From Carpediemonas membranifera BICM (taxonomy: Eukaryota; Protista; Fornicata), in the NCBI GenBank assembly GCA_019828565.1, contig JAHDYR010000053.1, forward strand, positions 1,028,272 through 1,092,271: a stretch of 64,000 bases of DNA. Reading direction: 5' to 3'. Below, one piece after another: positions 17,412 to 61,128 of this stretch; the stretch's first letter is position 1, and the number at the start of each line of letters is the position of its first letter. The position numbers and the translations under genes are program-made. The notes beneath the pieces are model-generated. The model was not told the DNA's origin, made no database searches, and saw only the letters and a program-made list of their open reading frames with translations.

Positions 17412-17433
17412 TTGCAATCAAACAACCAAAAAC

Positions 17434-17449
17434 GGTGTCATCTGACACC
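17434..17449 (+). promoter_or_regulatory. Histone-type 3' stem-loop candidate
   Basis: GGTGTC-ATCT-GACACC (6-bp stem, 4-nt loop), 22 nt after the H4 stop, preceded by CCAAAAAC and followed by AAA. Confidence 0.55.
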
Positions 17450-17638
17450 AAATCTAATCAAAATCAGTTTCTCACCAGGCGGGAAGGAAGTTCGTGTTAT
17501 ACCGATCGCAATTGTAAAGAATCGACGTTGGACATTAGACTTTTATCTCGATGTGGGCTCCCTCACCAGGCTCTGCCAGAAAGTACTGCCGACGGAGGCT
17601 CGACATGCTGAGTGCAAGGCGTGTCACACCTACTACCG

Positions 17639-18172: not shown

Positions 18173-18479
18173 GTCGTCATGTATATTATAGTAGTTGTCT
18201 TATGTCCATTCAGCTTATATAATCTTCCAGTATGTCACCTCTCCACGCTCCTTGGCCCGACCGAGCAAGCCGCACATGAATCCAACAATGCGAGGCTTAG
18301 AATACCATGCTTCAGACCGGAGGCGCTGAAATAATGCCAGCTCCGCTTGACTGCGTCGCTCCCATAGTGAATCGGCTGTGTACGGCCATCCTACTGACAG
18401 TCACTCAAAACGAGAAAACCGACGCTCGCAATAGCCCAAGCATAAGAGTAGAAATATTGTAATTTTTACCTGCTAGCAC

Positions 18480-26226: not shown

Positions 26227-29200
26227 ATGCACACAGTGGACGCAAACTACGCGGCGGCACACATTGCCTATGCCCTCTCGGATGTGTCTATGATCTATCC
26301 CATCACACCCTCCTCCACCATGGGCGAATTGGTGGACCAGTGGGCCAGCGAAGACCGGAAGAACATCTATGGCAACCTCCTGAAGGTCGTCGAGATGCAG
26401 TCTGAAGGCGGTGTCGCTGGTTCCGTCCACGGCTGCATTGGCACTGGCTCCCTCGTCTCCACTTTCACTGCCTCCCAGGGCCTCCTCCTCATGATGCCCA
26501 ACATGTACAAGATCGCCGGCGAGCTCCTCCCCTGTGTCTTCCACGTGTCTGCCCGTGCCGTTGCCGGCCAGGCTCTTTCCATCTTCGGTGACCACTCTGA
26601 TGTTATGGGTGTCCGCGCCGCCGGCTGGAACTACATCGCCTCCGCCTCTGCCCAGGAGTCCATGGATCTCGCCCTCGTCGCTCACCTCGCCACTCTGCGC
26701 GCTTCCCTCCCCTTCGTCCACTTCTTCGATGGTTTCCGCAGCTCCCACGAGCTCTCCACCATCGATTTCATCGACTACGCTGACATCGCCAAGCTCGTCG
26801 ACCACGACGCCATTGCCGCCTTCCGCGCCCGCGCCCTCAACCCCGAGCACCCCGTCATGCGCGGTACCGCCCAGGGCCCCGAGATCTTCATGCAGGCTGT
26901 TGAGGCCGCCAACAAGTACTACAACGCCGTTCCCGAGATCGTCCAGGAGGAGATGGACCGCGTCTCTAAGCTGACCGGCCGTGAGTACCACCTCTTCGAC
27001 TACCACGGTGCCGCCGACGCCACCAAGGTCATCGTCACCATCGGCTCCTCCGCCAATGTCATCCACGAGACCGTCGACTACCTGCTCAAGCAGGGCGAGA
27101 AGGTTGGCCTCATCAAGTGCCGCCTCCCCCGCCCCTTCTCCGTCGAGCACTTCGTCGCCGCCATGCCCAAGACCGTCCAGAAGGTTGCCGTCCTCGACCG
27201 CACCAAGGAGCCCGGCGCTGTTGGCGAGCCCCTCTACCTCGACGTTGTCGCCGCCATGATGTCCGCCTACGAGGGCACCATGCCTAAGATCGTCGGTGGC
27301 CGCTACGGCCTCGGCTCCAAGGCCTTCACCCCCGCCATGGTCAAGGGCATCTACGACTACCTCGAGAACAAGCCCCAGCACGGCTTCCTTGTCGGCATCG
27401 AGGACGATGTCTGCCACAAGTCCATCCCCGTTGGCGAGGAGATCAACGTCATGCCCAACGACGTCAAGCAGTGCCTCTTCTGGGGCCTCGGCGCCGATGG
27501 CACTGTTGGTGCTAACAAGAACGTCATGAAGCTCATCAGCGAGGAGTCCGACAACTACGTCCAGGGCTACTTCGCTTACGATTCCAAGAAGTCTGGCGGT
27601 GTCACTGCTTCCCACCTTCGCTTCGGTCCCCGCCCCATCACCTCTCACTACGAGATCGTGACCGCTGACTACGTCGCTTGCCACTTCGCCCAGTACGCCA
27701 AGACCTTCGACCTCCTCTCCTCCCTCGCCAAGGGGTGGTGTGTTCGTCCTCAACACTGTCTGGACCGACGAGGAGCTTGAGCACGAGCTCCCCAACGCCT
27801 TCAAGCGCGAGCTCGCCGAGAAGAACGCCAAGTTCTACTGCATCAACGCTAACGCCGTCGCTGAGAAGTGCGGCCTCGGTGGCCGTATCAACAACGTCAT
27901 GATGACTGTCTTCTTCAAGCTCGTCGAGATCATCCCCCTCGAGACCGCCGTCAAGGCCCTCAAGGCCGCTGTCTACAAGTCCTACCGTCTCAAGGGCGAC
28001 GACATCGTCAACAACAACTACGCCGCTATCGATGCTGCCCTCGAGGGCCTCCGCGAGGTCCCCGTCAAGGCTGAGTGGGCTTCCCTCAAGGACGACGAGG
28101 CCACCCTCGGCAACGAGAACGAGACCTACCGCAAGATCATCAAGCCCCCTTGCTGAGCAGCGCGGCAACAGCCTCCCCGTCTCTGCCCTCCCCGCCGGCG
28201 GCGAGATGCCCACCGCCACCACTCAGTACGAGCGCCGCTGCGTCGCCTCCCACGTCCCCAAGTGGGCCGGCGAGTGCTCTCAGTGCAACAAGTGCTCCCT
28301 GGTGTGCCCCCACGCCACCATCCGCCCCTTCCTCGTCACCGAGGAGCAGGCCAAGGCCGCCGACCTCACCGTCCAGAAGGCCAAGGCTCTTGGCAAGAAC
28401 GCCCCCACCGACCTCTTCTTCCGCATCCAGGTCGACCCCTTCGACTGCACTGGCTGTGGCGCCTGCGTTGAGGTGTGCCCCTCCCACGCCCTCTCCTTCC
28501 AGACCATCGACGAGGGTCTTGAGGCTGAGGCCGAGCACTGGGACTACTGCCTTACCCTTCCCCTCCGCGACGACATCCTCGCCCCCTCCACCGTCAAGGG
28601 CGCCATGTTCCAGCGTCCCCTTCTTGAGTTCTCTGGTGCCTGCGCCGGCTGCGGTGAGACCCCCTACGTCAAGCTCCTCACCCAGCTCTTCGGCTCCCGC
28701 ATGATCATCGCCAACGCTACTGGCTGCTCTTCCATCTGGGGTGGCTCCTTCCCCGTCTCCCCCTACGCTGTTGACAAGGACGGCAAGGGCCCCGCCTGGG
28801 CTAACTCCCTCTTCGAGGACAACGCCGAGTACGGCGCTGGCTTCGCCGTCTCCGTCCAGACCCGCCGCGCCAACCTCGCCCTCGACATGGACCGCGTTGT
28901 CGCTGACAAGCTTGTCTCCGACGAGCTTGCTACCGCGTTCGCCGCCTGGAAGGAGGGCATGAACGTTGCTGAGGTCGCCGCCATCGAGGCCGCGAAGGTC
29001 AAGGCCCTTCTCAAGGACGTCAAGGCCGAGACCGGTACCCCTCTCGAGCGCATCCTCCAGAACCAGGACCTCCTCGCCAAGCCTTCCGTCTGGATCGTCG
29101 GTGGTGACGGCTGGGCCTACGATATCGGCTATGGTGGCCTCGACCACGTGCTCTCCATGGGCCTCGACCTCAACATCCTCGTCATGGACACTGAGGTGTA

Positions 29201-29748
29201 CTCTAACACTGGTGGCCAGTGCTCCAAGGCCACCCAGATGGGCGCTGTCGCTAAGTTCAGCTCCAGCGGGAAGCCCGGCAAGAAGAAGGATCTTGGCGCC
29301 ATCGCCATGACCTACGGCAACGTCTTCGTCGCCTCTGTCGCCATGGGCGCCAACACCAAGCAGCTCATCGACTCTGTCTCGGCTGCTGAGTCCTACAACG
29401 GCACCTCTCTGATCATTGCCTACGCCCCGTGCATTGCTCACGGCATCAAGGGCGGCCTCCGCCGCGCTCAGAATGAGGAGAAGCTCGCTGTCGAGTCTGG
29501 CTACTGGCTGCTCTACTCGTTCGACCCCCCGCCTTGCTGCTGCTGGCAAGAACCCCATGAAGCTGACCTCCAAGCCCGCTAAGATCGACGTTCAGGAGTT
29601 CCTCGACAACGAGGCCCGTTTCGCCGCCCTCAAGAAGACCCAGCCCGAGCGCGCTGCCGAGCTCGCCGCCCAGCTCTCCAAGGACCTCAAGGCCCGCTAC
29701 CACCAGTACGTCGCTTTGGTCGCCGCCAACGAGCCCCAGGCTGAATAA
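26227..29748 (+). CDS. PFO: Pyruvate:ferredoxin oxidoreductase copy 1 (three +1 homopolymer frameshifts)
   Basis: Essentially the same sequence as the intact copies, with extra bases in G-run 27732-27735, C-run 28145-28149 and C-run 29525-29530. Confidence 0.88.
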
Positions 29749-30233
29749 GATCGATAAAACATTTACCTATTTTTCCGGATGACATCTTGCGACACCAATG
29801 AATGGCAGAGGTGGGTATGGTAGCAGCTATAGCGCCTGTGGCGTGATGCAGCAGCGCGTGGAGGGGTGGTGCCGTGCCAAACGCCGGGTGGGATCAAGTT
29901 ACGACAAGTGCCGGAAACGATGACAATGACAGAAGCGCGGCGACGACGATGGTCTGCAGTGTGTTGGGACCACCTGGAGAGCCTGCCTCGCCCGTCGCGT
30001 GAGCTGGTGCCGCCTGGGTGCCGGCGGCCGTTGGGCTCCATGGCGGCAGGGTTGGCTCTGACAGGCTAAACGACAGGCGGACGGCTTGAGGGGGGTGTGG
30101 ACGGACGCATGGCGGTTTTAGAGCGCTGGATTGTCCTCTAAACATGATCGGATCCTTCGATTTTGTTTGATATGACGTGACTCTTTCATCTTTTTTTCTT
30201 GCTTCTTTTTCTGCAAGAACGTTGAACGTTGAA

Positions 30234-33200
30234 ATGCACACAGTGGACGCAAACTACGCGGCGGCACACATTGCCTATGCCCTCTCGGATGTGTCTATGA
30301 TCTATCCCATCACACCCTCCTCCACCATGGGCGAATTGGTGGACCAGTGGGCCAGCGAAGACCGGAAGAACATCTATGGCAACCTCCTGAAGGTCGTCGA
30401 GATGCAGTCTGAAGGCGGTGTCGCTGGTTCCGTCCACGGCTGCATTGGCACTGGCTCCCTCGTCTCCACTTTCACTGCCTCCCAGGGCCTCCTCCTCATG
30501 ATGCCCAACATGTACAAGATCGCCGGCGAGCTCCTCCCCTGTGTCTTCCACGTGTCTGCCCGTGCCGTTGCCGGCCAGGCTCTTTCCATCTTCGGTGACC
30601 ACTCTGATGTTATGGGTGTCCGCGCCGCCGGCTGGAACTACATCGCCTCCGCCTCTGCCCAGGAGTCCATGGATCTCGCCCTCGTCGCTCACCTCGCCAC
30701 TCTGCGCGCTTCCCTCCCCTTCGTCCACTTCTTCGATGGTTTCCGCAGCTCCCACGAGCTCTCCACCATCGATTTCATCGACTACGCTGACATCGCCAAG
30801 CTCGTCGACCACGACGCCATTGCCGCCTTCCGCGCCCGCGCCCTCAACCCCGAGCACCCCGTCATGCGCGGTACCGCCCAGGGCCCCGAGATCTTCATGC
30901 AGGCTGTTGAGGCCGCCAACAAGTACTACAACGCCGTTCCCGAGATCGTCCAGGAGGAGATGGACCGCGTCTCTAAGCTGACCGGCCGTGAGTACCACCT
31001 CTTCGACTACCACGGTGCCGCCGACGCCACCAAGGTCATCGTCACCATCGGCTCCTCCGCCAATGTCATCCACGAGACCGTCGACTACCTGCTCAAGCAG
31101 GGCGAGAAGGTTGGCCTCATCAAGTGCCGCCTCCCCCGCCCCTTCTCCGTCGAGCACTTCGTCGCCGCCATGCCCAAGACCGTCCAGAAGGTTGCCGTCC
31201 TCGACCGCACCAAGGAGCCCGGCGCTGTTGGCGAGCCCCTCTACCTCGACGTTGTCGCCGCCATGATGTCCGCCTACGAGGGCACCATGCCTAAGATCGT
31301 CGGTGGCCGCTACGGCCTCGGCTCCAAGGCCTTCACCCCCGCCATGGTCAAGGGCATCTACGACTACCTCGAGAACAAGCCCCAGCACGGCTTCCTTGTC
31401 GGCATCGAGGACGATGTCTGCCACAAGTCCATCCCCGTTGGCGAGGAGATCAACGTCATGCCCAGCGACGTCAAGCAGTGCCTCTTCTGGGGCCTCGGCG
31501 CCGATGGCACTGTTGGTGCTAACAAGAACGTCATGAAGCTCATCAGCGAGGAGTCCGACAACTACGTCCAGGGCTACTTCGCTTACGATTCCAAGAAGTC
31601 TGGCGGTGTCACTGCTTCCCACCTTCGCTTCGGTCCCCGCCCCATCACCTCTCACTACGAGATCGTGACCGCTGACTACGTCGCTTGCCACTTCGCCCAG
31701 TACGCCAAGACCTTCGACCTCCTCTCCTCCCTCGCCAAGGGTGGTGTGTTCGTCCTCAACACTGTCTGGACCGACGAGGAGCTTGAGCACGAGCTCCCCA
31801 ACGCCTTCAAGCGCGAGCTCGCCGAGAAGAACGCCAAGTTCTACTGCATCAACGCTAACGCCGTCGCTGAGAAGTGCGGCCTCGGTGGCCGTATCAACAA
31901 CGTCATGATGACTGTCTTCTTCAAGCTCGTCGAGATCATCCCCCTCGAGACCGCCGTCAAGGCCCTCAAGGCCGCTGTCTACAAGTCCTACCGTCTCAAG
32001 GGCGACGACATCGTCAACAACAACTACGCCGCTATCGATGCTGCCCTCGAGGGCCTCCGCGAGGTCCCCGTCAAGGCTGAGTGGGCTTCCCTCAAGGACG
32101 ACGAGGCCACCCTCGGCAACGAGAACGAGACCTACCGCAAGATCATCAAGCCCCTTGCTGAGCAGCGCGGCAACAGCCTCCCCGTCTCTGCCCTCCCCGC
32201 CGGCGGCGAGATGCCCACCGCCACCACTCAGTACGAGCGCCGCTGCGTCGCCTCCCACGTCCCCAAGTGGGCCGGCGAGTGCTCTCAGTGCAACAAGTGC
32301 TCCCTGGTGTGCCCCCACGCCACCATCCGCCCCTTCCTCGTCACCGAGGAGCAGGCCAAGGCCGCCGACCTCACCGTCCAGAAGGCCAAGGCTCTTGGCA
32401 AGAACGCCCCCACCGACCTCTTCTTCCGCATCCAGGTCGACCCCTTCGACTGCACTGGCTGTGGCGCCTGCGTTGAGGTGTGCCCCTCCCACGCCCTCTC
32501 CTTCCAGACCATCGACGAGGGTCTTGAGGCTGAGGCCGAGCACTGGGACTACTGCCTTACCCTTCCCCTCCGCGACGACATCCTCGCCCCCTCCACCGTC
32601 AAGGGCGCCATGTTCCAGCGTCCCCTTCTTGAGTTCTCTGGTGCCTGCGCCGGCTGCGGTGAGACCCCCTACGTCAAGCTCCTCACCCAGCTCTTCGGCT
32701 CCCGCATGATCATCGCCAACGCTACTGGCTGCTCTTCCATCTGGGGTGGCTCCTTCCCCGTCTCCCCCTACGCTGTTGACAAGGACGGCAAGGGCCCCGC
32801 CTGGGCTAACTCCCTCTTCGAGGACAACGCCGAGTACGGCGCTGGCTTCGCCGTCTCCGTCCAGACCCGCCGCGCCAACCTCGCCCTCGACATGGACCGC
32901 GTTGTCGCTGACAAGCTTGTCTCCGACGAGCTTGCTACCGCGTTCGCCGCCTGGAAGGAGGGCATGAACGTTGCTGAGGTCGCCGCCATCGAGGCCGCGA
33001 AGGTCAAGGCCCTTCTCAAGGACGTCAAGGCCGAGACCGGTACCCCTCTCGAGCGCATCCTCCAGAACCAGGACCTCCTCGCCAAGCCTTCCGTCTGGAT
33101 CGTCGGTGGTGACGGCTGGGCCTACGATATCGGCTATGGTGGCCTCGACCACGTGCTCTCCATGGGCCTCGACCTCAACATCCTCGTCATGGACACTGAG

Positions 33201-33752
33201 GTGTACTCTAACACTGGTGGCCAGTGCTCCAAGGCCACCCAGATGGGCGCTGTCGCTAAGTTCAGCTCCAGCGGGAAGCCCGGCAAGAAGAAGGATCTTG
33301 GCGCCATCGCCATGACCTACGGCAACGTCTTCGTCGCCTCTGTCGCCATGGGCGCCAACACCAAGCAGCTCATCGACTCTGTCTCGGCTGCTGAGTCCTA
33401 CAACGGCACCTCTCTGATCATTGCCTACGCCCCGTGCATTGCTCACGGCATCAAGGGCGGCCTCCGCCGCGCTCAGAATGAGGAGAAGCTCGCTGTCGAG
33501 TCTGGCTACTGGCTGCTCTACTCGTTCGACCCCCGCCTTGCTGCTGCTGGCAAGAACCCCATGAAGCTGACCTCCAAGCCCGCTAAGATCGACGTTCAGG
33601 AGTTCCTCGACAACGAGGCCCGTTTCGCCGCCCTCAAGAAGACCCAGCCCGAGCGCGCTGCCGAGCTCGCCGCCCAGCTCTCCAAGGACCTCAAGGCCCG
33701 CTACCACCAGTACGTCGCTTTGGTCGCCGCCAACGAGCCCCAGGCTGAATAA
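30234..33752 (+). CDS. PFO: Pyruvate:ferredoxin oxidoreductase copy 2 (intact)
   Basis: YPITPS, EMQSEGG, GLGADGTVGANKN, two 4Fe-4S motifs (CSQCNKCSLVCP, CTGCGACVEVCP), ACAGCGE, GGDGWAYDIG and EVYSNTGGQ. First ATG is at 30234. Confidence 0.97.
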   Translation: MHTVDANYAAAHIAYALSDVSMIYPITPSSTMGELVDQWASEDRKNIYGNLLKVVEMQSEGGVAGSVHGCIGTGSLVSTFTASQGLLLMMPNMYKIAGELLPCVFHVSARAVAGQALSIFGDHSDVMGVRAAGWNYIASASAQESMDLALVAHLATLRASLPFVHFFDGFRSSHELSTIDFIDYADIAKLVDHDAIAAFRARALNPEHPVMRGTAQGPEIFMQAVEAANKYYNAVPEIVQEEMDRVSKLTGREYHLFDYHGAADATKVIVTIGSSANVIHETVDYLLKQGEKVGLIKCRLPRPFSVEHFVAAMPKTVQKVAVLDRTKEPGAVGEPLYLDVVAAMMSAYEGTMPKIVGGRYGLGSKAFTPAMVKGIYDYLENKPQHGFLVGIEDDVCHKSIPVGEEINVMPSDVKQCLFWGLGADGTVGANKNVMKLISEESDNYVQGYFAYDSKKSGGVTASHLRFGPRPITSHYEIVTADYVACHFAQYAKTFDLLSSLAKGGVFVLNTVWTDEELEHELPNAFKRELAEKNAKFYCINANAVAEKCGLGGRINNVMMTVFFKLVEIIPLETAVKALKAAVYKSYRLKGDDIVNNNYAAIDAALEGLREVPVKAEWASLKDDEATLGNENETYRKIIKPLAEQRGNSLPVSALPAGGEMPTATTQYERRCVASHVPKWAGECSQCNKCSLVCPHATIRPFLVTEEQAKAADLTVQKAKALGKNAPTDLFFRIQVDPFDCTGCGACVEVCPSHALSFQTIDEGLEAEAEHWDYCLTLPLRDDILAPSTVKGAMFQRPLLEFSGACAGCGETPYVKLLTQLFGSRMIIANATGCSSIWGGSFPVSPYAVDKDGKGPAWANSLFEDNAEYGAGFAVSVQTRRANLALDMDRVVADKLVSDELATAFAAWKEGMNVAEVAAIEAAKVKALLKDVKAETGTPLERILQNQDLLAKPSVWIVGGDGWAYDIGYGGLDHVLSMGLDLNILVMDTEVYSNTGGQCSKATQMGAVAKFSSSGKPGKKKDLGAIAMTYGNVFVASVAMGANTKQLIDSVSAAESYNGTSLIIAYAPCIAHGIKGGLRRAQNEEKLAVESGYWLLYSFDPRLAAAGKNPMKLTSKPAKIDVQEFLDNEARFAALKKTQPERAAELAAQLSKDLKARYHQYVALVAANEPQAE

Positions 33753-34236
33753 GATCGATAAAACATTTACCTATTTTTCCGGATGACATCTTGCGACACC
33801 AATGAATGGCAGAGGTGGGTATGGTAGCAGCTATAGCGCCTGTGGCGTGATGCAGCAGCGCGTGGAGGGGTGGTGCCGTGCCAAACGCCGGGTGGGATCA
33901 AGTTACGACAAGTGCCGGAAACGATGACAATGACAAAAGCGCGGCGACGACGATGGTCTGCAGTGTGTTGGGACCACCTGGAGAGCCTGCCTCGCCCGTC
34001 GCGTGAGCTGGTGCCGCCTGGGTGCCGGCGGCCGTTGGGCACCATGGCGGCAGGGTTGGCTCTGACAGGCTAAACGACAGGCGGACGGCTTGAGGGGGTG
34101 TGGACGGACGCATGGCGGTTTTAGAGCGCTGGATTGTCCTCTAAACATGATCGGATCCTTCGATTTTGTTTGATATGACGTGACTCTTTCATCTTTTTTT
34201 CTTGCTTCTTTTTCTGCAAGAACGTTGAACGTTGAA

Positions 34237-37200
34237 ATGCACACAGTGGACGCAAACTACGCGGCGGCACACATTGCCTATGCCCTCTCGGATGTGTCTA
34301 TGATCTATCCCATCACACCCTCCTCCACCATGGGCGAATTGGTGGACCAGTGGGCCAGCGAAGACCGGAAGAACATCTATGGCAACCTCCTGAAGGTCGT
34401 CGAGATGCAGTCTGAAGGCGGTGTCGCTGGTTCCGTCCACGGCTGCATTGGCACTGGCTCCCTCGTCTCCACTTTCACTGCCTCCCAGGGCCTCCTCCTC
34501 ATGATGCCCAACATGTACAAGATCGCCGGCGAGCTCCTCCCCTGTGTCTTCCACGTGTCTGCCCGTGCCGTTGCCGGCCAGGCTCTTTCCATCTTCGGTG
34601 ACCACTCTGATGTTATGGGTGTCCGCGCCGCCGGCTGGAACTACATCGCCTCCGCCTCTGCCCAGGAGTCCATGGATCTCGCCCTCGTCGCTCACCTCGC
34701 CACTCTGCGCGCTTCCCTCCCCTTCGTCCACTTCTTCGATGGTTTCCGCAGCTCCCACGAGCTCTCCACCATCGATTTCATCGACTACGCTGACATCGCC
34801 AAGCTCGTCGACCACGACGCCATTGCCGCCTTCCGCGCCCGCGCCCTCAACCCCGAGCACCCCGTCATGCGCGGTACCGCCCAGGGCCCCGAGATCTTCA
34901 TGCAGGCTGTTGAGGCCGCCAACAAGTACTACAACGCCGTTCCCGAGATCGTCCAGGAGGAGATGGACCGCGTCTCTAAGCTGACCGGCCGTGAGTACCA
35001 CCTCTTCGACTACCACGGTGCCGCCGACGCCACCAAGGTCATCGTCACCATCGGCTCCTCCGCCAATGTCATCCACGAGACCGTCGACTACCTGCTCAAG
35101 CAGGGCGAGAAGGTTGGCCTCATCAAGTGCCGCCTCCCCCGCCCCTTCTCCGTCGAGCACTTCGTCGCCGCCATGCCCAAGACCGTCCAGAAGGTTGCCG
35201 TCCTCGACCGCACCAAGGAGCCCGGCGCTGTTGGCGAGCCCCTCTACCTCGACGTTGTCGCCGCCATGATGTCCGCCTACGAGGGCACCATGCCTAAGAT
35301 CGTCGGTGGCCGCTACGGCCTCGGCTCCAAGGCCTTCACCCCCGCCATGGTCAAGGGCATCTACGACTACCTCGAGAACAAGCCCCAGCACGGCTTCCTT
35401 GTCGGCATCGAGGACGATGTCTGCCACAAGTCCATCCCCGTTGGCGAGGAGATCAACGTCATGCCCAACGACGTCAAGCAGTGCCTCTTCTGGGGCCTCG
35501 GCGCCGATGGCACTGTTGGTGCTAACAAGAACGTCATGAAGCTCATCAGCGAGGAGTCCGACAACTACGTCCAGGGCTACTTCGCTTACGATTCCAAGAA
35601 GTCTGGCGGTGTCACTGCTTCCCACCTTCGCTTCGGTCCCCGCCCCATCACCTCTCACTACGAGATCGTGACCGCTGACTACGTCGCTTGCCACTTCGCC
35701 CAGTACGCCAAGACCTTCGACCTCCTCTCCTCCCTCGCCAAGGGTGGTGTGTTCGTCCTCAACACTGTCTGGACCGACGAGGAGCTTGAGCACGAGCTCC
35801 CCAACGCCTTCAAGCGCGAGCTCGCCGAGAAGAACGCCAAGTTCTACTGCATCAACGCTAACGCCGTCGCTGAGAAGTGCGGCCTCGGTGGCCGTATCAA
35901 CAACGTCATGATGACTGTCTTCTTCAAGCTCGTCGAGATCATCCCCCTCGAGACCGCCGTCAAGGCCCTCAAGGCCGCTGTCTACAAGTCCTACCGTCTC
36001 AAGGGCGACGACATCGTCAACAACAACTACGCCGCTATCGATGCTGCCCTCGAGGGCCTCCGCGAGGTCCCCGTCAAGGCTGAGTGGGCTTCCCTCAAGG
36101 ACGACGAGGCCACCCTCGGCAACGAGAACGAGACCTACCGCAAGATCATCAAGCCCCTTGCTGAGCAGCGCGGCAACAGCCTCCCCGTCTCTGCCCTCCC
36201 CGCCGGCGGCGAGATGCCCACCGCCACCACTCAGTACGAGCGCCGCTGCGTCGCCTCCCACGTCCCCAAGTGGGCCGGCGAGTGCTCTCAGTGCAACAAG
36301 TGCTCCCTGGTGTGCCCCCACGCCACCATCCGCCCCTTCCTCGTCACCGAGGAGCAGGCCAAGGCCGCCGACCTCACCGTCCAGAAGGCCAAGGCTCTTG
36401 GCAAGAACGCCCCCACCGACCTCTTCTTCCGCATCCAGGTCGACCCCTTCGACTGCACTGGCTGTGGCGCCTGCGTTGAGGTGTGCCCCTCCCACGCCCT
36501 CTCCTTCCAGACCATCGACGAGGGTCTTGAGGCTGAGGCCGAGCACTGGGACTACTGCCTTACCCTTCCCCTCCGCGACGACATCCTCGCCCCCTCCACC
36601 GTCAAGGGCGCCATGTTCCAGCGTCCCCTTCTTGAGTTCTCTGGTGCCTGCGCCGGCTGCGGTGAGACCCCCTACGTCAAGCTCCTCACCCAGCTCTTCG
36701 GCTCCCGCATGATCATCGCCAACGCTACTGGCTGCTCTTCCATCTGGGGTGGCTCCTTCCCCGTCTCCCCCTACGCTGTTGACAAGGACGGCAAGGGCCC
36801 CGCCTGGGCTAACTCCCTCTTCGAGGACAACGCCGAGTACGGCGCTGGCTTCGCCGTCTCCGTCCAGACCCGCCGCGCCAACCTCGCCCTCGACATGGAC
36901 CGTGTTGTCGCTGACAAGCTTGTCTCCGACGAGCTTGCTACCGCGTTCGCCGCCTGGAAGGAGGGCATGAACGTTGCTGAGGTCGCCGCCATCGAGGCCG
37001 CGAAGGTCAAGGCCCTTCTCAAGGACGTCAAGGCCGAGACCGGTACCCCTCTCGAGCGCATCCTCCAGAACCAGGACCTCCTCGCCAAGCCTTCCGTCTG
37101 GATCGTCGGTGGTGACGGCTGGGCCTACGATATCGGCTATGGTGGCCTCGACCACGTGCTCTCCATGGGCCTCGACCTCAACATCCTCGTCATGGACACT

Positions 37201-37755
37201 GAGGTGTACTCTAACACTGGTGGCCAGTGCTCCAAGGCCACCCAGATGGGCGCTGTCGCTAAGTTCAGCTCCAGCGGGAAGCCCGGCAAGAAGAAGGATC
37301 TTGGCGCCATCGCCATGACCTACGGCAACGTCTTCGTCGCCTCTGTCGCCATGGGCGCCAACACCAAGCAGCTCATCGACTCTGTCTCGGCTGCTGAGTC
37401 CTACAACGGCACCTCTCTGATCATTGCCTACGCCCCGTGCATTGCTCACGGCATCAAGGGCGGCCTCCGCCGCGCTCAGAATGAGGAGAAGCTCGCTGTC
37501 GAGTCTGGCTACTGGCTGCTCTACTCGTTCGACCCCCGCCTTGCTGCTGCTGGCAAGAACCCCATGAAGCTGACCTCCAAGCCCGCTAAGATCGACGTTC
37601 AGGAGTTCCTCGACAACGAGGCCCGTTTCGCCGCCCTCAAGAAGACCCAGCCCGAGCGCGCTGCCGAGCTCGCCGCCCAGCTCTCCAAGGACCTCAAGGC
37701 CCGCTACCACCAGTACGTCGCTTTGGTCGCCGCCAACGAGCCCCAGGCTGAATAA
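34237..37755 (+). CDS. PFO: Pyruvate:ferredoxin oxidoreductase copy 3 (intact)
   Basis: Same motifs as copy 2; differs by very few substitutions (e.g. PND versus PSD). Confidence 0.97.
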   Translation: MHTVDANYAAAHIAYALSDVSMIYPITPSSTMGELVDQWASEDRKNIYGNLLKVVEMQSEGGVAGSVHGCIGTGSLVSTFTASQGLLLMMPNMYKIAGELLPCVFHVSARAVAGQALSIFGDHSDVMGVRAAGWNYIASASAQESMDLALVAHLATLRASLPFVHFFDGFRSSHELSTIDFIDYADIAKLVDHDAIAAFRARALNPEHPVMRGTAQGPEIFMQAVEAANKYYNAVPEIVQEEMDRVSKLTGREYHLFDYHGAADATKVIVTIGSSANVIHETVDYLLKQGEKVGLIKCRLPRPFSVEHFVAAMPKTVQKVAVLDRTKEPGAVGEPLYLDVVAAMMSAYEGTMPKIVGGRYGLGSKAFTPAMVKGIYDYLENKPQHGFLVGIEDDVCHKSIPVGEEINVMPNDVKQCLFWGLGADGTVGANKNVMKLISEESDNYVQGYFAYDSKKSGGVTASHLRFGPRPITSHYEIVTADYVACHFAQYAKTFDLLSSLAKGGVFVLNTVWTDEELEHELPNAFKRELAEKNAKFYCINANAVAEKCGLGGRINNVMMTVFFKLVEIIPLETAVKALKAAVYKSYRLKGDDIVNNNYAAIDAALEGLREVPVKAEWASLKDDEATLGNENETYRKIIKPLAEQRGNSLPVSALPAGGEMPTATTQYERRCVASHVPKWAGECSQCNKCSLVCPHATIRPFLVTEEQAKAADLTVQKAKALGKNAPTDLFFRIQVDPFDCTGCGACVEVCPSHALSFQTIDEGLEAEAEHWDYCLTLPLRDDILAPSTVKGAMFQRPLLEFSGACAGCGETPYVKLLTQLFGSRMIIANATGCSSIWGGSFPVSPYAVDKDGKGPAWANSLFEDNAEYGAGFAVSVQTRRANLALDMDRVVADKLVSDELATAFAAWKEGMNVAEVAAIEAAKVKALLKDVKAETGTPLERILQNQDLLAKPSVWIVGGDGWAYDIGYGGLDHVLSMGLDLNILVMDTEVYSNTGGQCSKATQMGAVAKFSSSGKPGKKKDLGAIAMTYGNVFVASVAMGANTKQLIDSVSAAESYNGTSLIIAYAPCIAHGIKGGLRRAQNEEKLAVESGYWLLYSFDPRLAAAGKNPMKLTSKPAKIDVQEFLDNEARFAALKKTQPERAAELAAQLSKDLKARYHQYVALVAANEPQAE

Positions 37756-41072: not shown

Positions 41073-43172
41073 CTAGACGAGATACGTCCCCTCCGCCAGG
41101 TCGCCCGCCCTATAGGCGTCCATGAGGTCCTTCAGATCCTGGACCCTCTCCTTGAGCCTGACACCGATATCGGTCTCAGCCACCCTCAGCCTGTGGCTCC
41201 ACTTCTCAATGATCTTCAGCTCAGTGACCATGTCCTCGTTCGTGTCGACAGCGTGGTGTCTTGACAGGAATGGCTTATGAATGGCCAACCACAGGCCGTG
41301 GGAGTCGTTGATGAGCGTGTACCCCGCCGTCCCCGTCTCCCCCTGGTATGCCTCGCAGTAGCCCCCATCAATGGCAATGAGTCGGCCGTTGGCCTTGACC
41401 GGCATCTCACCGTCCTTGGCTCTCACAGGGACGTGCCCGTTGATGATGTGCCCGTGGGTGACGTCCGCATCGAACTCAGCCAGGACCTTCTTGACGAACT
41501 CCTCGTCTTCTCTCAGCTTGTAGTACGCGTTTCCCTGCTCCTTCCACTGAATCTTATCCTCGAGGAAATAACGCTCGAACGTGGCCATCTTGCTACGGCC
41601 AAACAGAGGCGAGACAGGACCAGCCCAAAGATACCACATGCAGTCGCACCCGAACTGCTTTCGAGCATATGGATCTGACTGGCCCTGACCTTCATGGGCT
41701 GCCAGCTCGATGGGCGTGATCTCGGGCAAGAAATAACCATCGCGGGCAGCCTTATCGAAAGCATCGAGCTGGGATACCCCGGCCAGTGGCTTCCCGAATA
41801 TGTTATTCGTAGTAAATTCACCGTTCGCGTCGACTGGGATGCAGCCATGGAAGAGGAGATCGCCGTTCTTGACCAGATAGATGGACCCCACCTGGAATAA
41901 GAACCGGATGTGCTCCTGCAGCGCCGAGGACGATTGGAAGGAGTACCGCAGCCGCTGCAGCACCTTGATCTCGGCCTCACTGAGGGCAGTCGGGTTGGCT
42001 GGGTCGACCGTGGGCCACACCTTGTCCTTGAGCGGATATGTCTGCCCGTCGATGGTGATCGTGTAGTTCTCCCAGTCGACCATGCGGAGAGACTGTCGGC
42101 CGGCCATGCCGAACGACGGGTTGCGGTCGATGAGACTTGACTCGACCTTAAACTGCATAATGGAGACTGCCTTGTGCATTTGGGCGACGAGCTTGCGGTT
42201 GGTCTTGTCGCTCTTGGGGATGAAGAGCTCGCATGGGTCGTCGGCGTAGGTCTCCATAGCAAAGGTCGCGAGTGGAAGCAGGCTGATACCGTACCCGTTC
42301 TCGATCGTGTCGAGGTTGTTATAACGGAGGCTGATTCTGAGAACGTTGCAGATGCAGGCGAGTGACCCAGCTGCAGCACCCATCCACAACATGTCATGGT
42401 TGCCCCAGGCGACGTCGATGCTGTGGAAATGCATAAGTGTGTCCATGATGCGGTGTGCCATGGAGCCGCGGTCGTAAACATCGCCCAGAACATGGAGGTG
42501 GTCCACAGCCAGACGTTGGATCAGACGGCAAAGGGCAACGAGCAGAGACGCGCCCTGACCGAGGTCAATGGCCTCCCGGATGATGGAGGTATAGTAGGTT
42601 CGCTTGTCACTACTATCCTCTTGCTCATGGATGAGCTCGTTGATCATGTAGCTGAACTGCTTGGGGAGGGCCTTGGTCACCTTCGACCGGGTGTACTTCG
42701 ATGCGGCCAGTCGGGCTACCATTACGAGCCTGTAGATGTTGACGGCGAGCCAGTCATCTCTCGCAGCGACCTCGGGCATTGCGTGGAATATGATACGCAT
42801 CTTCTGCTCAGGGTAGTAGACAAGCATGCAGAGAGCGGCCCTCTCATCGGCACAGAGCGTCATTCCGAACGCCTGGTCGACCTTGTAGGCGACGACCCCA
42901 CTGGCGTTGCGGAGGGTGTGATCGAACGACCGGAAGGCGCCATGGAGGTCGCTGACGTATTGTTCAGTGCCCTTGGGCAGCCCGAGGATGGCGCGAAGGT
43001 TGATGGCCTCACAGGCGGCAGTTTCAAGTGTTGGGAACGTTTGGGAGAGAGTTTTCAGGTACTTCACGCGTACTTCATTCATGGTTGCTTCTGTGATCCG
43101 TTCAGCGGCTGAAACGTTACTATTGGTCACGCTTGCAATACTATACGAACGATCACGTGATCTCCTCGGCAT
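41073..43172 (-). CDS. Fructose-1,6-bisphosphatase class III (bacterial Fbp/YydE type)
   Basis: INLRAILGLPKGTE..SDLHG, LRNASG, SKYTRSKV.KALP, DHLHVLGDVYDRG, WGNHD, IINGHVPV and IDGG are class III FBPase motifs. Confidence 0.92.
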   Translation of the reverse strand: MPRRSRDRSYSIASVTNSNVSAAERITEATMNEVRVKYLKTLSQTFPTLETAACEAINLRAILGLPKGTEQYVSDLHGAFRSFDHTLRNASGVVAYKVDQAFGMTLCADERAALCMLVYYPEQKMRIIFHAMPEVAARDDWLAVNIYRLVMVARLAASKYTRSKVTKALPKQFSYMINELIHEQEDSSDKRTYYTSIIREAIDLGQGASLLVALCRLIQRLAVDHLHVLGDVYDRGSMAHRIMDTLMHFHSIDVAWGNHDMLWMGAAAGSLACICNVLRISLRYNNLDTIENGYGISLLPLATFAMETYADDPCELFIPKSDKTNRKLVAQMHKAVSIMQFKVESSLIDRNPSFGMAGRQSLRMVDWENYTITIDGQTYPLKDKVWPTVDPANPTALSEAEIKVLQRLRYSFQSSSALQEHIRFLFQVGSIYLVKNGDLLFHGCIPVDANGEFTTNNIFGKPLAGVSQLDAFDKAARDGYFLPEITPIELAAHEGQGQSDPYARKQFGCDCMWYLWAGPVSPLFGRSKMATFERYFLEDKIQWKEQGNAYYKLREDEEFVKKVLAEFDADVTHGHIINGHVPVRAKDGEMPVKANGRLIAIDGGYCEAYQGETGTAGYTLINDSHGLWLAIHKPFLSRHHAVDTNEDMVTELKIIEKWSHRLRVAETDIGVRLKERVQDLKDLMDAYRAGDLAEGTYLV

Positions 43173-44340: not shown

Positions 44341-45053
44341 TCAGGCCAGCTTCTTGACTGGGTTGGCCTTGGCGCTCTTGCTCCAGTAGCTGGTGACCTT
44401 GAACGTCATGTTCGCCATTTCATACCCAAAGTGAGTCAGAAGCTTCGCCTGCTTGGCAGTGAGCTCATCACCCTCGTTGCAGATGGTGTAGTCGTGTAGC
44501 AGTGTGATCACACCCTCGTGGAGCTTGCATGGCAGACCCAGCGCGCGGAGACGGGGCTCGAGGGGGAATGGGAACTCAATCTTGTCCAGAGGCCCCTCAG
44601 GAATCTCTACGTCCTCTGTCGCAATGTTACCGGCCGTAGCGGCGACAGGCTCGCTGTACTTGTTGAAGAATGACTGGACGAGTTTGGGGCCGGAGGAGGA
44701 GACGAAAAGCATAGAATCACCGCTGATGTCCTTGACAAGGCCGTCAAGGCCGGCAGGAACATCTTCACCGCTGAGGGCAATCGCCATAACGCGCTTCTTG
44801 CCATTGAAGATGCGACCACCGGGGTGCTCCTTCGTGGCAACCTGAAGGAGCTCACGGACGTTGCCCATCTTCGAAGAAACAAGGTTTTTGTGTTGAATAA
44901 CGTAAACATATGCGGCGTCCTTCACTTCATCTCTGATCTTGGCAACAAGCTCCTCTTTCTGTTCACGGCCCTTCTTCTCAACCTCAGTGAGGGCAACTGG
45001 GTAATATACGTTGGTATCAACAAACAATCGCGGTCGCGGCGGTTCCTAGGCAT
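44341..45053 (-). CDS. MRT4: Ribosome assembly factor Mrt4; two exons (intron 44997-45025)
   Basis: Splicing a 29-nt GTTTGT..CCAG intron gives MPRNRRDRDFALTEVEKKG, the Mrt4-type N-terminus. Also GKKRVMAIAL, EPRLRALGLP and LTAKQAKLL. Confidence 0.9.
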
Positions 45054-45137
45054 CTATAAGAGCGAGCTGCAAGACGACTCTGCCCGACTCGCAGAATAAG
45101 GATCGCTGGATGTGGTATTTAGAGATGTTTACTGGGG

Positions 45138-46637
45138 GTGGATGTGGTATTTAGACTCAACAATTCTAATCCTGCGCGGCACACCACCTCCACTCACCCA
45201 CTTCAGCCCTCGTCTGTACAATCGGGCTTTCGTGCTTTCAGTCGTCGGTCCGCACGAAGAGATGCGTCGTCTGTCGTCCATCGTCTGTGTCGAACGCTGC
45301 TGTCTTCTTTCGCGTCGGTGCTCGTCTGTTACGCGCTTGCATTGCCCGAGGGGCAACGGGTGGGTCGCACTGATACCGTGGCCGAGGCCCTTGTCGGCGT
45401 GCTGTCGTGCGTCACGCGCATGAGTGCTGCAGTGACCAAGCTGGTCACACTCACTCGTGCCGTGAACCTCGAGCTCAGCCAGGCCCTGCCAGAGCCGAAG
45501 CTCATTCCGTTCGTGCCGATGGCACCGGTCAGGCCTGGGTTCATGACCATCGAGTACGGTCATATATCGCTCACCCCAGCGATGAAGAGGCGCCTCCGTG
45601 TCTATCGAGATTGGTCAGCGAAGAGCAACTTGACCGACGAGCAGGATGATAGATACGAGCGTGATCACGGCGACATCACCAAGCTCCGCAGAGTGCTCTC
45701 TGTGAAGACTGACGGGGTATCTGTTGCTGTGACCGTTTGGGTGGGTCGCGAGAAATACCGTGGGGGTCGGGTGGCTGACCGGCCCACGTACAAAAAGGGT
45801 AACAAAAACAAGCGGGCTCGGCTCGGTCAGGATGACGCCGAGGCTACTCCTGCCCCGGACATTCAAGCTCTCATGGGCTTCGACCCTGGTGCTCGGTCGC
45901 TGGGCGGCTACACGATCCGCCGCCCAGGCGGGCAGGGTGTATCTGGCGTACTCGCTAAGTGTGGCTACACTGCCACCCCCTCTTTCCGCGTGAATATGAG
46001 CGCAGCATCGTTCAAAACGACAAGTCTAGAGGCTCTCAAACAGTCGATTAGGTTTGTCCATGAGAACATCGTTCAGATCATCAACGAGGGGACGAGAAAG
46101 TGTTTCCGCCGTGCGACTTTTGCCAATCACTGTCTGCGCCTGAAGCACTTCGCCCGGGCTGGACGTCAACTCCTGGATGATCTCGGCGGGCGCACCCCGG
46201 AGCCCATTCACCTCAAAGTCGCGTATGGGGCTGCACTGTTCGGTTCTGCCGGCACTCCCTCCTGTGCTCCGTACCGCCACTTTGCTCGAGCACTTCCTGG
46301 CATAATGCTCCGGCACAACGTCGTCGTGACAGTCACGATGGTCTCCGAATTCCGCACTTCCATCGTGTGCCCATACTGCAAAGCACACTTCAGACGTGTG
46401 GTGCACACATACCGCACCATGCTCTGCCAGAATCCCGCGTGCGAGGGAGCTCCATGGCGCGTTGAACGGCTACGTCGGCATCCCGAGCAGAGAGACATAC
46501 TTCTCAATCTCTCTCACCGAGATAAGAGCGCCAGCGAGAACATCCTTTGGTGCACCTACGATGCAACTTCAGATCAGATGGAGCAATCTCCTTTCCACTA
46601 CGACTCCCAGAGAGGTGCTCTTCCTCGCTATCATTAA
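45138..46637 (+). CDS. Fanzor1-type (TnpB-derived) RNA-guided RuvC endonuclease; first ATG 45420 (405 aa), open frame extends upstream to about 45138
   Basis: Motifs in Fanzor1 order: FVPM..PGFMTI, SVKTDGVSV, RuvC-I GFDPG (D at 45882), SFKTTSL insertion, FRRATF helix, VAYGAALF..AP, RuvC-II VSEFRTS (E at 46347), Zn finger CPYC..CQNPAC, RuvC-III HRDKSASENI (D at 46521). Confidence 0.88.
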   Translation: MDVVFRLNNSNPARHTTSTHPLQPSSVQSGFRAFSRRSARRDASSVVHRLCRTLLSSFASVLVCYALALPEGQRVGRTDTVAEALVGVLSCVTRMSAAVTKLVTLTRAVNLELSQALPEPKLIPFVPMAPVRPGFMTIEYGHISLTPAMKRRLRVYRDWSAKSNLTDEQDDRYERDHGDITKLRRVLSVKTDGVSVAVTVWVGREKYRGGRVADRPTYKKGNKNKRARLGQDDAEATPAPDIQALMGFDPGARSLGGYTIRRPGGQGVSGVLAKCGYTATPSFRVNMSAASFKTTSLEALKQSIRFVHENIVQIINEGTRKCFRRATFANHCLRLKHFARAGRQLLDDLGGRTPEPIHLKVAYGAALFGSAGTPSCAPYRHFARALPGIMLRHNVVVTVTMVSEFRTSIVCPYCKAHFRRVVHTYRTMLCQNPACEGAPWRVERLRRHPEQRDILLNLSHRDKSASENILWCTYDATSDQMEQSPFHYDSQRGALPRYH

Positions 46638-46769
46638 CTTGCTAAGTTGAGCAAGCACGCGCTGCAGCGCGCGTGATATGCAGCGCACGATTGATAGAGT
46701 ATGATGAACCACACTGCGATCCTGATGCTGCTTGGATCACTGTGTGTTTTGGACTCAACAATTCTAATC
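46638..46769 (+). ncRNA. Candidate Fanzor omegaRNA (scaffold about 46638-46751, guide about 46752-46769; 5' end may overlap the ORF)
   Basis: Lies directly after the stop codon. Hairpins CTTGCT/AGCAAG (46638-46655), CACGCGC/GCGCGTG (46656-46675) and an imperfect CACAC..GATCC/GGATC..GTGTG stem (about 46707-46748). This is where omegaRNAs sit in TnpB/Fanzor loci. Confidence 0.55.
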
Positions 46770-46969
46770 GATTTATACATGTATAAAAGTGTTACGTAAC
46801 CCACTGGTCCAACACTGTCAGCGGCCCAATTCTAATCCTGCGCGGCACACTGGAAAAAGCCTTGCTGGCTGCTTGGAGGCTCAGACTGCTGACAGGAGCG
46901 TGTCCCTTACATGCTAACAGTATAGAATACGTATAAAACAGACAAATCGAGAGAACCTGCAAATCATAT

Positions 46970-57634: not shown

Positions 57635-60436
57635 ATGCGGGATCATTACGGCTGTAACGCACGTATCCCGCGTAGTCCCTGGGCCCAGTCGAGCGGATCG
57701 GACAGGACCTGCAGTCGACGAGGTCGTCTCGCGTCGAAAGAAATGACCAATGACCTTCAACACGAGAGTAACAACGTCGTATTAACATCTATTATGAAGA
57801 GACATCTGCAAATGACGGGAGCGCCCGGTTTCGAGGCCAGTGATGGCGCTGGGTTTGATGAGAAGCTTTCAAACAGGAAACGGAAGCAAAAACGGACGCA
57901 TCAGGGGCTAAAACCGTCAGCCATCGGTGCGTCTGATATCCCTCCCGACACCCGCGTTGCACAGGCGAGGCGCATGTACCAATTGTTGCGGACCATCTCG
58001 AAGACCCGACACGATTGCAAGCGCACGACGTCCCTACGCGACCTGCAGTCCTTTGCACGGGACGCTGTAAGCGCATCCGCATCGCCCAAGCTCCCGGCCA
58101 ACGCCGCTGCCCTCGTCAATGCCCGTCTGGGCCGCTATGCTGCGGCCGTGGGCTCCCTCCGGGCTGGACAGAGCGGTTCGGGTTTCAAACGGATCGTTGG
58201 CGGGCCTAAGGTTGTTGCTGCGTCAGAGGAGACACTGGCTAAGTACCAGGAGAAGACCCCTCCCGCCCGAGAGGGCCCGCTGCCCGCCTGGGTCGACCTG
58301 GAGCTAGAGCAGGACGCCGCATTGTACCGCGTGTCCTGTAACCCAGACGACGACGCCCTGCAGACGATAACAAGGGCCCAGGTGCTGGACGCCCTCGACA
58401 CGTCCAATGGGGAGGCCTCGCCCGGCCCCACAGGCCTGTCCTACCGCCACGTCGCCCAGTTGACCGTAGCCTACCCTAAACTGCCCGATGCCCTGGCCTC
58501 GTTCGTCATGGACGTGCATCGGGGCCTGTTCAGGGCCCACCCCGAGGAGACGGTGTGGCTGAAGGGGACGGTCGGCGTTGCCCTGGACAAGCCCAACGCC
58601 CCCAACGCCATCCGCCCGCTAGCGATGGGAGAGACGCTTCGTAAGATCGCAGCGACCATTGGGGCCCGTGTGGCGGTGAGTCGGCTGGGGCTCGGGCTGT
58701 GGGTGAGCGACATGCAGATCGGGCTGGGGCAGTCCTCGGCCAGTGAGTTCGGGGCGCTGCATGTGCGGCACGAGCATGAGAGGGGGCGTTGGATTGTCAG
58801 CATCGACTTCAAGAACGCCTACAACACTCTATGTCGCCGGACCGTTTCTAAGGCTGTCTCGACATACTGTCCCGCACTAACCGCTTATGTCGAGCTGTTC
58901 TACTCAGCCCCCACTGCCATCAACCTAGGCCATCACACTGTTGTATCATCAACTGGTGTCCATCAAGGAGACCCTCTTTCGTCCCTGCTGTTCACACTGG
59001 GACTGCGGCCAGCACTGCTGAGAACACGCCGACTCGCCCCGGATGTCGGCATCACAGCGTACATGGACGACGTCACGCTGTCATGCCCCACAAGAGAGTC
59101 TGCAGCCCATGCCACAGCAACACTCATGGATGCCGCCACTCAGGTGGGGTTGGACGCCCAGCCGGCCAAGTGCGCGCTGCTGGTGCCCGAAGGAGAGCCT
59201 CTTGATGATCTTGTGGTGTACCCGGATCGCCCAGAGACCAACGTGCCGGCCACCAGCTGTATTGTAACGTGCGGCGTGGCTGTCGGGGACGAGGCCGGAG
59301 TCAAGGCGTACTACTCGGCCAAGGTGGACGGCGTAATCGCCCAGGTTGACGCTGTCAGGGAGTTTACGGACTTTTTTATGACTTCAGACCGGGTGTCCGC
59401 CTTCCCTGCCGTACAATGGGCGGGGTACCTGGCAACAACGCGTCTGATGCCTATTCTGACCTATTCAATGAGGACTACGTCGCCCGCTGTGCTCAGGCCT
59501 CATCTAGCAAGGGCAGACGCGGCGTTTGGACGGCTTGCACTGTCGCTGATGGCGCTGCCTGACGGAGCCAACCTTCCCCAGTCTGTCTCGGCTCCGGTGT
59601 CCAGGGGCGGTCTCGGGTTGGGCCATCTCGAGGCCATAGCTCCAGCTGCATACCTTGGCGCCCAGGTGTCCCATGCCAGGCTGGTGAGGGAGGCGGGTGT
59701 GCTCATCCGAGACCCCGACAACTGGACCCAACCTCCACTGGTGGTTGAGCCGGGTGGGATGCCCGAGGGTTGGCCCCAGACCACTGACGAGGCAATGAGT
59801 ATCGGTCTAGAGCCGTTCAAGGCACTCAGACGACTCGCCCTGGCAGACAAATACGGCCCTAAGATCGGAAAATCCCTGACCAAGACGCTGTTGTGTCAGA
59901 TTCCAACCCACATGGTCCCTAGTCAGAACATGGCGGCCCTACTGCGGGTTACTGCGGGTCTAGCGGTGCCGTGTGGGGACTGCAGCGACCTTTGGCGGGC
60001 TGGGCTGGAATCGTTGTGTCAGATCATCGTGGACGACCTCGAGTCGTGCGGCATGGCGGCCATACTTGACCGAACAACAGTTTACCAGGGCGACTTTGCC
60101 GAGATCAGGGTAGCCGACCCCATCCCGGCCCTGGTCGCAGTACAGCTCAGATTCGTGGTGTCAGATGTCGGTAGCGACCTTGTGGACGCGGAGTCTGAGA
60201 TGGCTGAGGACCTCGCCATCCAGTTCGAGGGGTGCGATGACGTCGTGCTGCCTATGGCAATCTCTCATCATTCGGGGCGTGTGTCCGTGGGGTTCAAGGC
60301 CCTGACCCGCTTTGTCAGGGCGCATAGGCCTGGTTGGGACCACCAGGGGATGATGGCGAGGCTCGGGCGGCAGCTGGCCCTTGAGAGTTACTTTATGGAC
60401 CTCGATGGAGAGAGCGATGGTGGCTTCTGGGACTGA
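57635..60436 (+). mobile_element. Non-LTR retroelement-type reverse transcriptase ORF (CRE/SLACS-like, R2 group) with a degenerate C-terminal RLE-like domain
   Basis: SPGPTGL, IRPLAMGETLRKI, QIG, IDFKNAYN, GVHQGDPLSSLLF, catalytic YMDD, GL..QPAKC and thumb P...GGLGL; 933-aa uninterrupted ORF. Confidence 0.88.
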
Positions 60437-61128
60437 TAGCTGTGAATGCGGTTCTAACTGTGTTGCGTGTTATTAGTAAAGCTACTCTTATCGCTGGATC
60501 TGTGCGACTGATGCAAGCACACGTGGGTGGCCGGGCTCCGTTGGCTCAGTGGCTGACTCATATTTTTTACGGTGACAAGCTGCGGGGAAGGCTCAAGTCA
60601 CAGATGCGCCAACTCATAGCGACGAAGCCGGCCGGGCATGAGAGGGATCGGCCGACCCAGGACCCGCCCCTGCCTCCAGCCCGGTATGATCGGCCGGTAA
60701 AATATATGCTCTCGAGAAATGAAGCCGAGGACACGCTTTCAGCCCCTCGTTTAATACCGAGAGTTAATTCCGCCGAAGCCACTGACGACTACCTTACGAC
60801 TGAAGCTGAGTCAAAGAACCCGCTCACCAAAAGTATCATGGGACATCGAGTGATGGTTGACCCAGGTGTGTCTCGGTTAACCATATCGCGACACTCATGA
60901 TTCCTCGATTGATCACACGCCAAGGTGTGTCGCCCCCTGGCCTGCAATCTCCACCACTTTGGTCGGTTTGACGTCACAACACCATCATGGTGGACCAGCG
61001 GTCAATGTGCAGCTTAGCCCCAGAGGGGTTTGGTGACTGATTCCTCTCCAACTCCACCAGACACCTTACAGACTGGCAGCCTGCGGCTCCAAGGCAGTTT
61101 AACCACTTAACGTAATCACCAGACTACT

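Follow-up and report, generated by a model that had tools for sequence, protein, structure and literature searches.

The Fanzor1 frame in the window, by which we mean the whole 64,000-nucleotide stretch of Carpediemonas membranifera DNA analysed here, is best explained as part of a passive, internally deleted derivative of a non-autonomous element of about 2.45 kb, whose sole gene encodes a standard-size Fanzor1 of 642 aa. We propose, with a probability of roughly 0.6, that this is a dead copy of a non-autonomous, LTR-like Fanzor1 shell that was integrated by a Ty3/gypsy integrase and that carries a homing omega-RNA nuclease. The window element is bounded at 45111-46849, with the 5-bp duplication CTGGA on both sides (45106-45110 and 46850-46854), and it has at least 94 family matches in the genome, most of them about 93% identical. 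An earlier, sequence-only reading had the frame sitting alone between two genes and no transposase nearby. The neighbours are an MRT4-like gene (PF00466 and PF17777) and a TIP49/RUVBL gene (PF06068) by profile match, both on the minus strand, and no transposase was found in the neighbourhood; it is the isolation that does not hold, as the frame lies inside a bounded mobile element. The host was rightly taken for an anaerobic flagellate, close homologues of the window protein being annotated from C. membranifera.

The stop-free frame at 45138-46637 (+) has 499 codons, or 405 from the first ATG at 45420, values that were unchanged on recomputation, and TDG, GFDPG, VAYG..AP, VSEFRTS-CPYC, CQNPAC and HRDKSASENI occur in it in the order first described. 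Published Fanzor fingerprints (PMC10711439, Yoon et al.) are DPG, TDG and a glutamate that lies six residues ahead of the zinc finger. In the 642-aa protein these correspond to D392-P-G at RuvC-I, invariant across three subfamilies; to the RuvC-II glutamate E547, which follows DPG after a 152-residue spacer (within the 120-160 residues of the published pattern) and precedes C554 by six residues; and to T334-D-G in the WED domain, with DG invariant across three subfamilies. The triad, D392/E547/D605, is spaced like that of SpuFz1 (D383/E541/D606; PMC11423790). The subfamilies are 43-51% identical to one another, and all keep the catalytic motifs. An enlarged REC and a total of about 600-850 aa are likewise found in the family (642 aa, with a helical N-terminal part) and are absent from the window copy. 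The CxxC-x(12-18)-CxxC-x(4-8)-D pattern of pro-Fanzor and Fanzor2-like TnpBs is not present: the second pair is CxxxxC and the RuvC-III aspartate comes 26 residues later, a difference from known Fanzor1 as well, which on sequence grounds would argue against Fanzor2 or pro-Fanzor and not against Fanzor1.

ESM Atlas gave the 642-aa protein a feature score of 0.98 and TM values of 0.59-0.64, over 473-511 residues, to PF26935 (DUF8286)/PF07282 clusters of 600-820 aa from Nucleocytoviricota and algae. The protein had no sequence homologue outside C. membranifera in homologue searches, which returned no distant relative and, where sources were named, C. membranifera only; the viral contigs searched held no sequence homologue either. 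Unlike known Fanzor1, the family is too divergent for HMM detection, and Pfam, NCBIfam, PHROGs and PDB sequence searches gave nothing significant for the protein (best Pfam, PF07282, E=0.05-0.5, with E=0.5 for the window frame). Comparison of predicted folds, which had been put forward as a check, added little to the assignment: two AlphaFold models were poor (pLDDT 38 and 41) and had no significant Foldseek or VIA-align match, and the longest, in-register but weak alignments of these low-confidence models were to PpFz/SpuFz (154-168 residues, Z 3.4-4.0). The protein shares its length, triad spacing, DPG, alternative RuvC-II glutamate, TDG and zinc finger with SpuFz1, GtFz1 and PpFz1 (PMC10432273, PMC11423790), and, as with known Fanzor1, its elements are multicopy, lack a transposase and have a predicted structured region of 80-145 nt from stop codon to right end. 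We consider it highly probable that the window ORF encodes a member of Fanzor1, an assignment that stands on DPG, the glutamate six residues ahead of the zinc finger, TDG, the SpuFz1-like triad spacing and the ESM Atlas match.

Pairwise alignment of the window copy with L008, L006 and L013 places a deletion of 818, 819 and 788 bp, respectively, at 45337/45338 (+). This junction joins the 5′ UTR to codon 211. Lost with the deletion are the remaining 5′ UTR, the start codon and codons 1-210, which encode the first WED strand and most of REC. Window residues 68-499 are residues 211-642 of the 642-aa protein, encoded by a remnant at 45339-46637 (+) with TDG at 45708-45716, the triad at D 45882, E 46347 and D 46521, and four intact zinc cysteines. 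The first ATG is M238, and the product that starts there lacks residues 1-237. The open frame of about 499 aa therefore overstates the Fanzor frame, its residues 1-67 being 5′ UTR and terminal repeat read in frame; in a genome search with the window frame, most full paralogue matches start at query residue 68. Searching for paralogues to define the true N-terminus did yield them, including an unbroken 642-aa frame in L008, the only one among 30 loci examined, and it showed the window copy not to be full-length. The junction is not an assembly slip, because it recurs unchanged in L027, which lies on a different contig and has a target duplication of its own. A further deletion form, 45332 to 46293 (skipping 960 nt of the window sequence, with 3 letters in between), was seen in all four sequencing runs examined.

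These data bear directly on the idea of a naturally compact, active Fanzor1 of 405 aa with a short REC. Although the frame is open, the triad and zinc cysteines are intact and the deleted form occurs at two loci, an open frame past the junction is what a recent deletion is expected to leave, the paralogues are 642 aa long, and the missing residues 1-237 include regions required to bind TAM and guide. Known Fanzor1 structures have the arginine that anchors the TAM, and the contacts to TAM and guide, within roughly the first 160 residues, so that the region absent from the window copy would hold the arginine and helix that bind the TAM as well as the surface that binds the guide (PMC11423790); in GtFz1, R85A abolishes activity (PMC11423790). 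By analogy, we infer that the 405-aa product could not target DNA. The candidate omega-RNA of the window copy also bears a 68-bp insertion. We regard a compact active enzyme as extremely improbable and the window copy as almost certainly non-functional. The sequence-only reading was right about the triad, which is intact together with the four zinc cysteines, whereas the function derived from it is made improbable by the loss of residues 1-210. Its small Fanzor1 with a short REC is instead a 5′-deleted copy of the 642-aa protein, and the paralogue comparison, on which it had itself staked "compact" and "apparently active", decides against both. The motifs, then, are real and the protein appears to be a Fanzor1, yet the window copy is likely neither compact nor active.

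Across the family, pN/pS is 0.42 over codons 211-642. Replacement and silent changes number 138:57 among private changes against 51:38 among shared ones (p=0.03), the private class being near neutral (neutral about 3:1) and the shared class poor in replacements. We read this pattern as one that selected source copies and their decaying progeny would produce. Over codons 1-210, pN/pS is 0.94. One 532-aa family member (P0028) bears the name "cytosine deaminase" in NCBI/UniRef, which looks like a misannotation.

At integration the element appears to act like an LTR unit, and we do not file it as a canonical LTR member. It begins with TGTGGTA and finishes with GCACA, and both ends are 41-nt units whose last 30 nt form a direct repeat, in contrast to the inverted ends of known Fanzor1 elements. 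Exact 5-bp TSDs flank it in 15 loci and in the window, in keeping with the TG...CA ends and 4-6-bp TSD by which LTR elements are recognised. In the window copy, the left end (TGTGGTATTTAGA, 45111-45123, +) is followed, after a secondary insert discussed below, by a complete 41-nt left terminal repeat (TGT...ACA, 45143-45183, +), the last 30 nt of which are common to the right end. Abutting it is a polypurine-tract-like run at 45184-45204 (17/21 purines on the minus strand), a feature also found next to the left repeat in subfamily 3, and then a remnant of the Fanzor 5′ UTR (45205-45337, +), which the sequence-only reading had read in frame. The right terminal repeat (TGTGTG...GCACA, 46741-46849, +) is interrupted by the 68-bp insertion at 46759-46826, made up of about 57 foreign bases and a 10-11-bp duplication. 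Subfamily 3 has different 43-nt units in the same layout with a 5-bp duplication (L046), and solo-end units with their own 5-bp TSD occur at four loci (L036, L039, L042, L047).

Several further arrangements involve these ends. The 43-nt, mini-LTR-like end of subfamily-3 type is present in L021, L023, L024, L045, L046 and L060; it occurs as solo units with 5-bp duplications and once within the right repeat of a subfamily-1 element. Nested or adjoining elements are found in L006, L026, L046, L052, L045 and L060, and subfamily-1 copies are inserted at subfamily-2 or -3 3′ ends, or in other terminal repeats, at motif-like sites. The insert at 46759-46826 is related to one at the same right-repeat position in L025, where it is longer; it has a palindromic TTTATACATGTATAAA core and is possibly a third site-specific element.

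TG...CA ends, 5-bp TSD, direct repeats, a purine tract and solo ends are shared with non-autonomous Ty3/gypsy LTR derivatives (TRIM/LARD-like). The Fanzor elements differ from these in having repeats of just 41-43 nt that are unequal within an element, in showing no primer-binding site, and in carrying nothing but an antisense Fanzor, whose candidate RNA scaffold includes the repeat. A normal LTR cycle of reverse transcription would make the two repeats equal. In 12 of 16 elements, however, the 30-nt repeat at the left is not identical to that at the right (0-5 changes), and the outer 11 nt are never alike, so the Fanzor elements do not show the two identical LTRs expected at insertion. The discordant ends count against a standard retrotransposition cycle, and an RNA intermediate would be hypothetical. 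Reading by eye after the right repeat revealed no TGG-type primer-binding site and no perfect palindrome, and no autonomous Ty3 with exactly these ends was found, no same-strand pair lying 4-8 kb apart among the first 100 of 140 matches, also read by eye.

A less probable reading is that of a DNA element which moves by cut-and-paste, using a Ginger-type transposase akin to gypsy integrase, with the Fanzor serving ordinary restorative homing after excision. TGT...ACA ends with a 5-bp TSD suit such enzymes, and discordant ends with many internal deletions are typical of DNA transposons. Moreover, every Fanzor carrier that PMC13565253 reviews is a DNA transposon. The element ends, however, have no inverted repeat beyond TGTG/CACA and their terminal repeats are direct; the purine tract beside the left repeat in two subfamilies, the solo-end units with TSDs of their own, and a promoter motif within the repeat, as in Ty3 LTRs of C. 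membranifera, all weigh in the same direction. We therefore judge cut-and-paste movement unlikely.

Integrase-type insertion using Ty3 machinery is, in our estimate, fairly probable. The genome has at least 150 rve integrase matches; Ty3/gypsy integrases are abundant, none of them linked to Fanzor ends. Same-strand pairs of a promoter-like 12-mer, 4.2-4.6 kb apart, bracket same-strand rve matches at a constant offset of 877-879 bp (C1, C4, C5), and therefore one Ty3 family carries the motif in its LTRs. The Fanzor repeat carries a variant of this 12-mer, oriented as its purine tract. We propose that the shell would derive from a Ty3/gypsy mini-LTR unit, with the Fanzor antisense to the retro orientation, and that repair between copies could account for the mixed ends and the many deletions.

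Nearly all left ends (about 48 of 51) carry a secondary insert after TTTAGA, and just 4 of 52 are free of one; in the loci read the insert is the antisense 3′ end of a truncated REL-type non-LTR element (RVT_1 E=6.7e-10, CCHC, RTADL..IDVTV motifs). The inserts have a fixed 3′ end and a variable 5′ end, measure 15-470 nt, are usually flanked by TTTAGA and are sometimes tandem. RT, CCHC knuckle, REL motif, fixed 3′ end, variable 5′ truncation and a repeat target are all features of the CRE/NeSL/R4/Utopia elements (PMC4640811), from which the Carpediemonas LINE differs in targeting a Fanzor terminal repeat and TTTACA-type sites elsewhere. In the window it is reduced to a 15-nt stub at 45124-45138 (-), which matches the 3′ tip of a variant of this LINE and starts as the L021 insert does, followed by a 17-nt duplication of 45107-45123 at 45139-45155 (+). 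As 3-4 nt of host flank are part of this duplication, the element had already landed when the stub came in. LINE copies were located at L037:1707-3320 (-), at L032:755-1930 (+) and at the left ends of most loci, and the target is TTTA(G/C)A, overwhelmingly within Fanzor left repeats.

The presence of LINE 3′ ends at almost all left ends might suggest that the LINE mobilises the Fanzor element. This we hold to be highly improbable: element ends are precise and the TSD is constantly 5 bp, the LINE sits within the repeat and has a TTTAGA duplication of its own (tandem in L004/L055/L056), the duplication at the window stub takes in host flank, LINE-free left ends exist (L028), and the LINE also resides elsewhere (L032, L037). 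On the precise ends, the TSDs and the LINE-free left ends we reject it as carrier; it would instead insert site-specifically at TTTAGA of the left repeat, copy by copy. A fixed Fanzor guide directed at the LINE was likewise rejected, there being no shared 10-mer. The window has a reverse transcriptase gene of its own, a 933-aa ORF at 57635-60436 (+) of non-LTR type (RVT_1 E=1e-15) without an obvious CCHC/REL tail. It has no second copy among the loci examined, is possibly domesticated, and was rejected as the LINE source at 25% identity.

The insertion sites have in common the motif GYGCAGTTTATG, which stands at -22..-11 on the left side and has no mirror on the right, whereas positions -10..-1 hold at most 0.3 bit. 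The motif is host promoter-like, and insertion falls 10 nt downstream of it. In the window a degenerate match at 45089-45100 (+), outside the element, scores 7.3 on a matrix trained without the window site. The exact 12-mer GTGCAGTTTATG has 677 genomic copies against 2 for the reversed control; in the window it stands at 40737 (+), 51490 (-), 48395 (-) and 51387 (-). Of the matrix matches in the window, 21/36 fall in the 24% outside long ORFs. We regard GTGCAGTTTATG, enriched outside ORFs and near gene starts and present in both LTRs of one Ty3 family, as a candidate core-promoter element of Carpediemonas. Of 30 right ends, 15 lie 8-32 nt before a host ATG that opens at least 150 codons (baseline 9.3%, p~1e-8). 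Motif frequency and ATG proximity together indicate that the element lands with the core-promoter motif on one side and a start codon on the other. An exception is the window copy, which has no plus-strand host gene downstream. Ty3 and Tf1 target promoters, and the Fanzor elements resemble them in integrating at a fixed distance from a promoter element.

A one-sided motif at a fixed distance would also be expected if the Fanzor itself guided integration, with the -22..-11 motif as seed match and the 5-bp duplication as staggered cut. Counted from position -21, bases 16/21 coincide with the SpuFz1 cuts, which fall after bases 16-17 and 20-21 (PMC10432273). Against this, the motif is a genome-wide host element with its hundreds of copies, each of its positions is conserved at only 60-80%, the 3′ region has no motif-matching guide in the needed orientation, and subfamily-3-type and solo ends use the same, unchanged motif one base further off (read by eye). 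We consider Fanzor-guided integration very unlikely. Our preferred reading is that a resident Ty3 integrase, tethered at core promoters, would integrate the shell in trans about 10 nt downstream of GYGCAGTTTATG.

The right end offers a candidate omega-RNA. In three subfamilies the sequence between stop codon and terminal CA gives a predicted stem closed at the element end (fold z -6.0 for the 81 nt of subfamily 3, -2.9 for subfamily 1 and -1.9 for subfamily 2), and three subfamily-2 copies diverge directly past the closing CA. In the window the candidate scaffold, including the right terminal repeat, occupies 46638-46849 (+), where two short hairpins accompany a long stem closed at the terminal CA. 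SpuFz1 offers a parallel, in that its scaffold spans the right end and is followed by 14-15 variable bases (PMC10432273), by analogy with which 46850-46870 (+), the right CTGGA and the next host bases, is the predicted guide region. Rfam had no match for the scaffold, and a consensus fold of 25 subfamily-1 3′ regions contained no compensatory pair, the copies being too alike. Intact copies would make an omega-RNA with its scaffold from stop codon to right repeat and a guide taken from the host flank. Bases unique to the right repeat pair inside the stem, and pairing of its first 11-15 nt there would explain the fixed left-right difference. A contig of RNA run X5 stops within the right repeat, at 46755, in an adapter-like tail, which is the one that marks the MRT4 5′ end; this is a weak indication. 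RNA and sequencing runs were examined as contigs only. The MRT4-like gene (44341-45079, -; ATG at 45055) has a 29-nt intron at 44997 that is spliced in X5, and its adapter-marked contig end at 45079 lies 32 nt from the element's left end.

Other features of the window are three tandem pyruvate:ferredoxin oxidoreductase genes (26227-37755, +), the first split into two ORFs; three EF-2/EF-G-type genes at 11450-20429, including an inverted pair of 649-aa ORFs (14724-16673, +; 18480-20429, -); and a Firmicute-type fructose-1,6-bisphosphatase at 41073-43172 (-; PF06874, E=1e-260), likely a gene transfer from bacteria. A 145-bp repeat at 3690-3832 and 60590-60732, found also in L040, is unrelated to the Fanzor element.

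The TAM of known Fanzors includes the 5′ duplication (PMC13565253). The Carpediemonas left end differs from those characterised: no conserved TAM was found in its flank or TSD, conservation lying instead at -22..-11, and there are no fixed adjoining bases from which to read one. Since the 5-bp duplication is variable and no fixed TAM stands beside the element, the TAM of the intact 642-aa protein may be relaxed or offset, which, if real, would be a property of practical interest. We propose that intact copies would be transcribed, copied and then put into promoters by the Ty3 integrase, and that the nuclease would cut the empty homologous site, with repair copying the filled allele across. Such a homing role is put forward tentatively, at somewhat below even odds. 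Slightly more doubtful is the full combination, in which Fanzor1 rides a retrotransposon chassis: Ty3 machinery would integrate it at transcription starts, the right mini-LTR would be the omega-RNA scaffold, and the nuclease would home into empty promoter alleles through a relaxed or offset TAM.

We found no paper linking Fanzor with Carpediemonas or metamonads, and the genus is absent from those parts of the Fanzor survey supplements that we consulted; this Fanzor1 lineage is the first described from a metamonad that we can find. The window copy is no editing tool. The family to which it belongs is worth a bench test and is notable for placing Fanzor1 on small, LTR-retrotransposon-like elements that land at host promoters. 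Homing, if true, would give an advantage even to an element that never excises.
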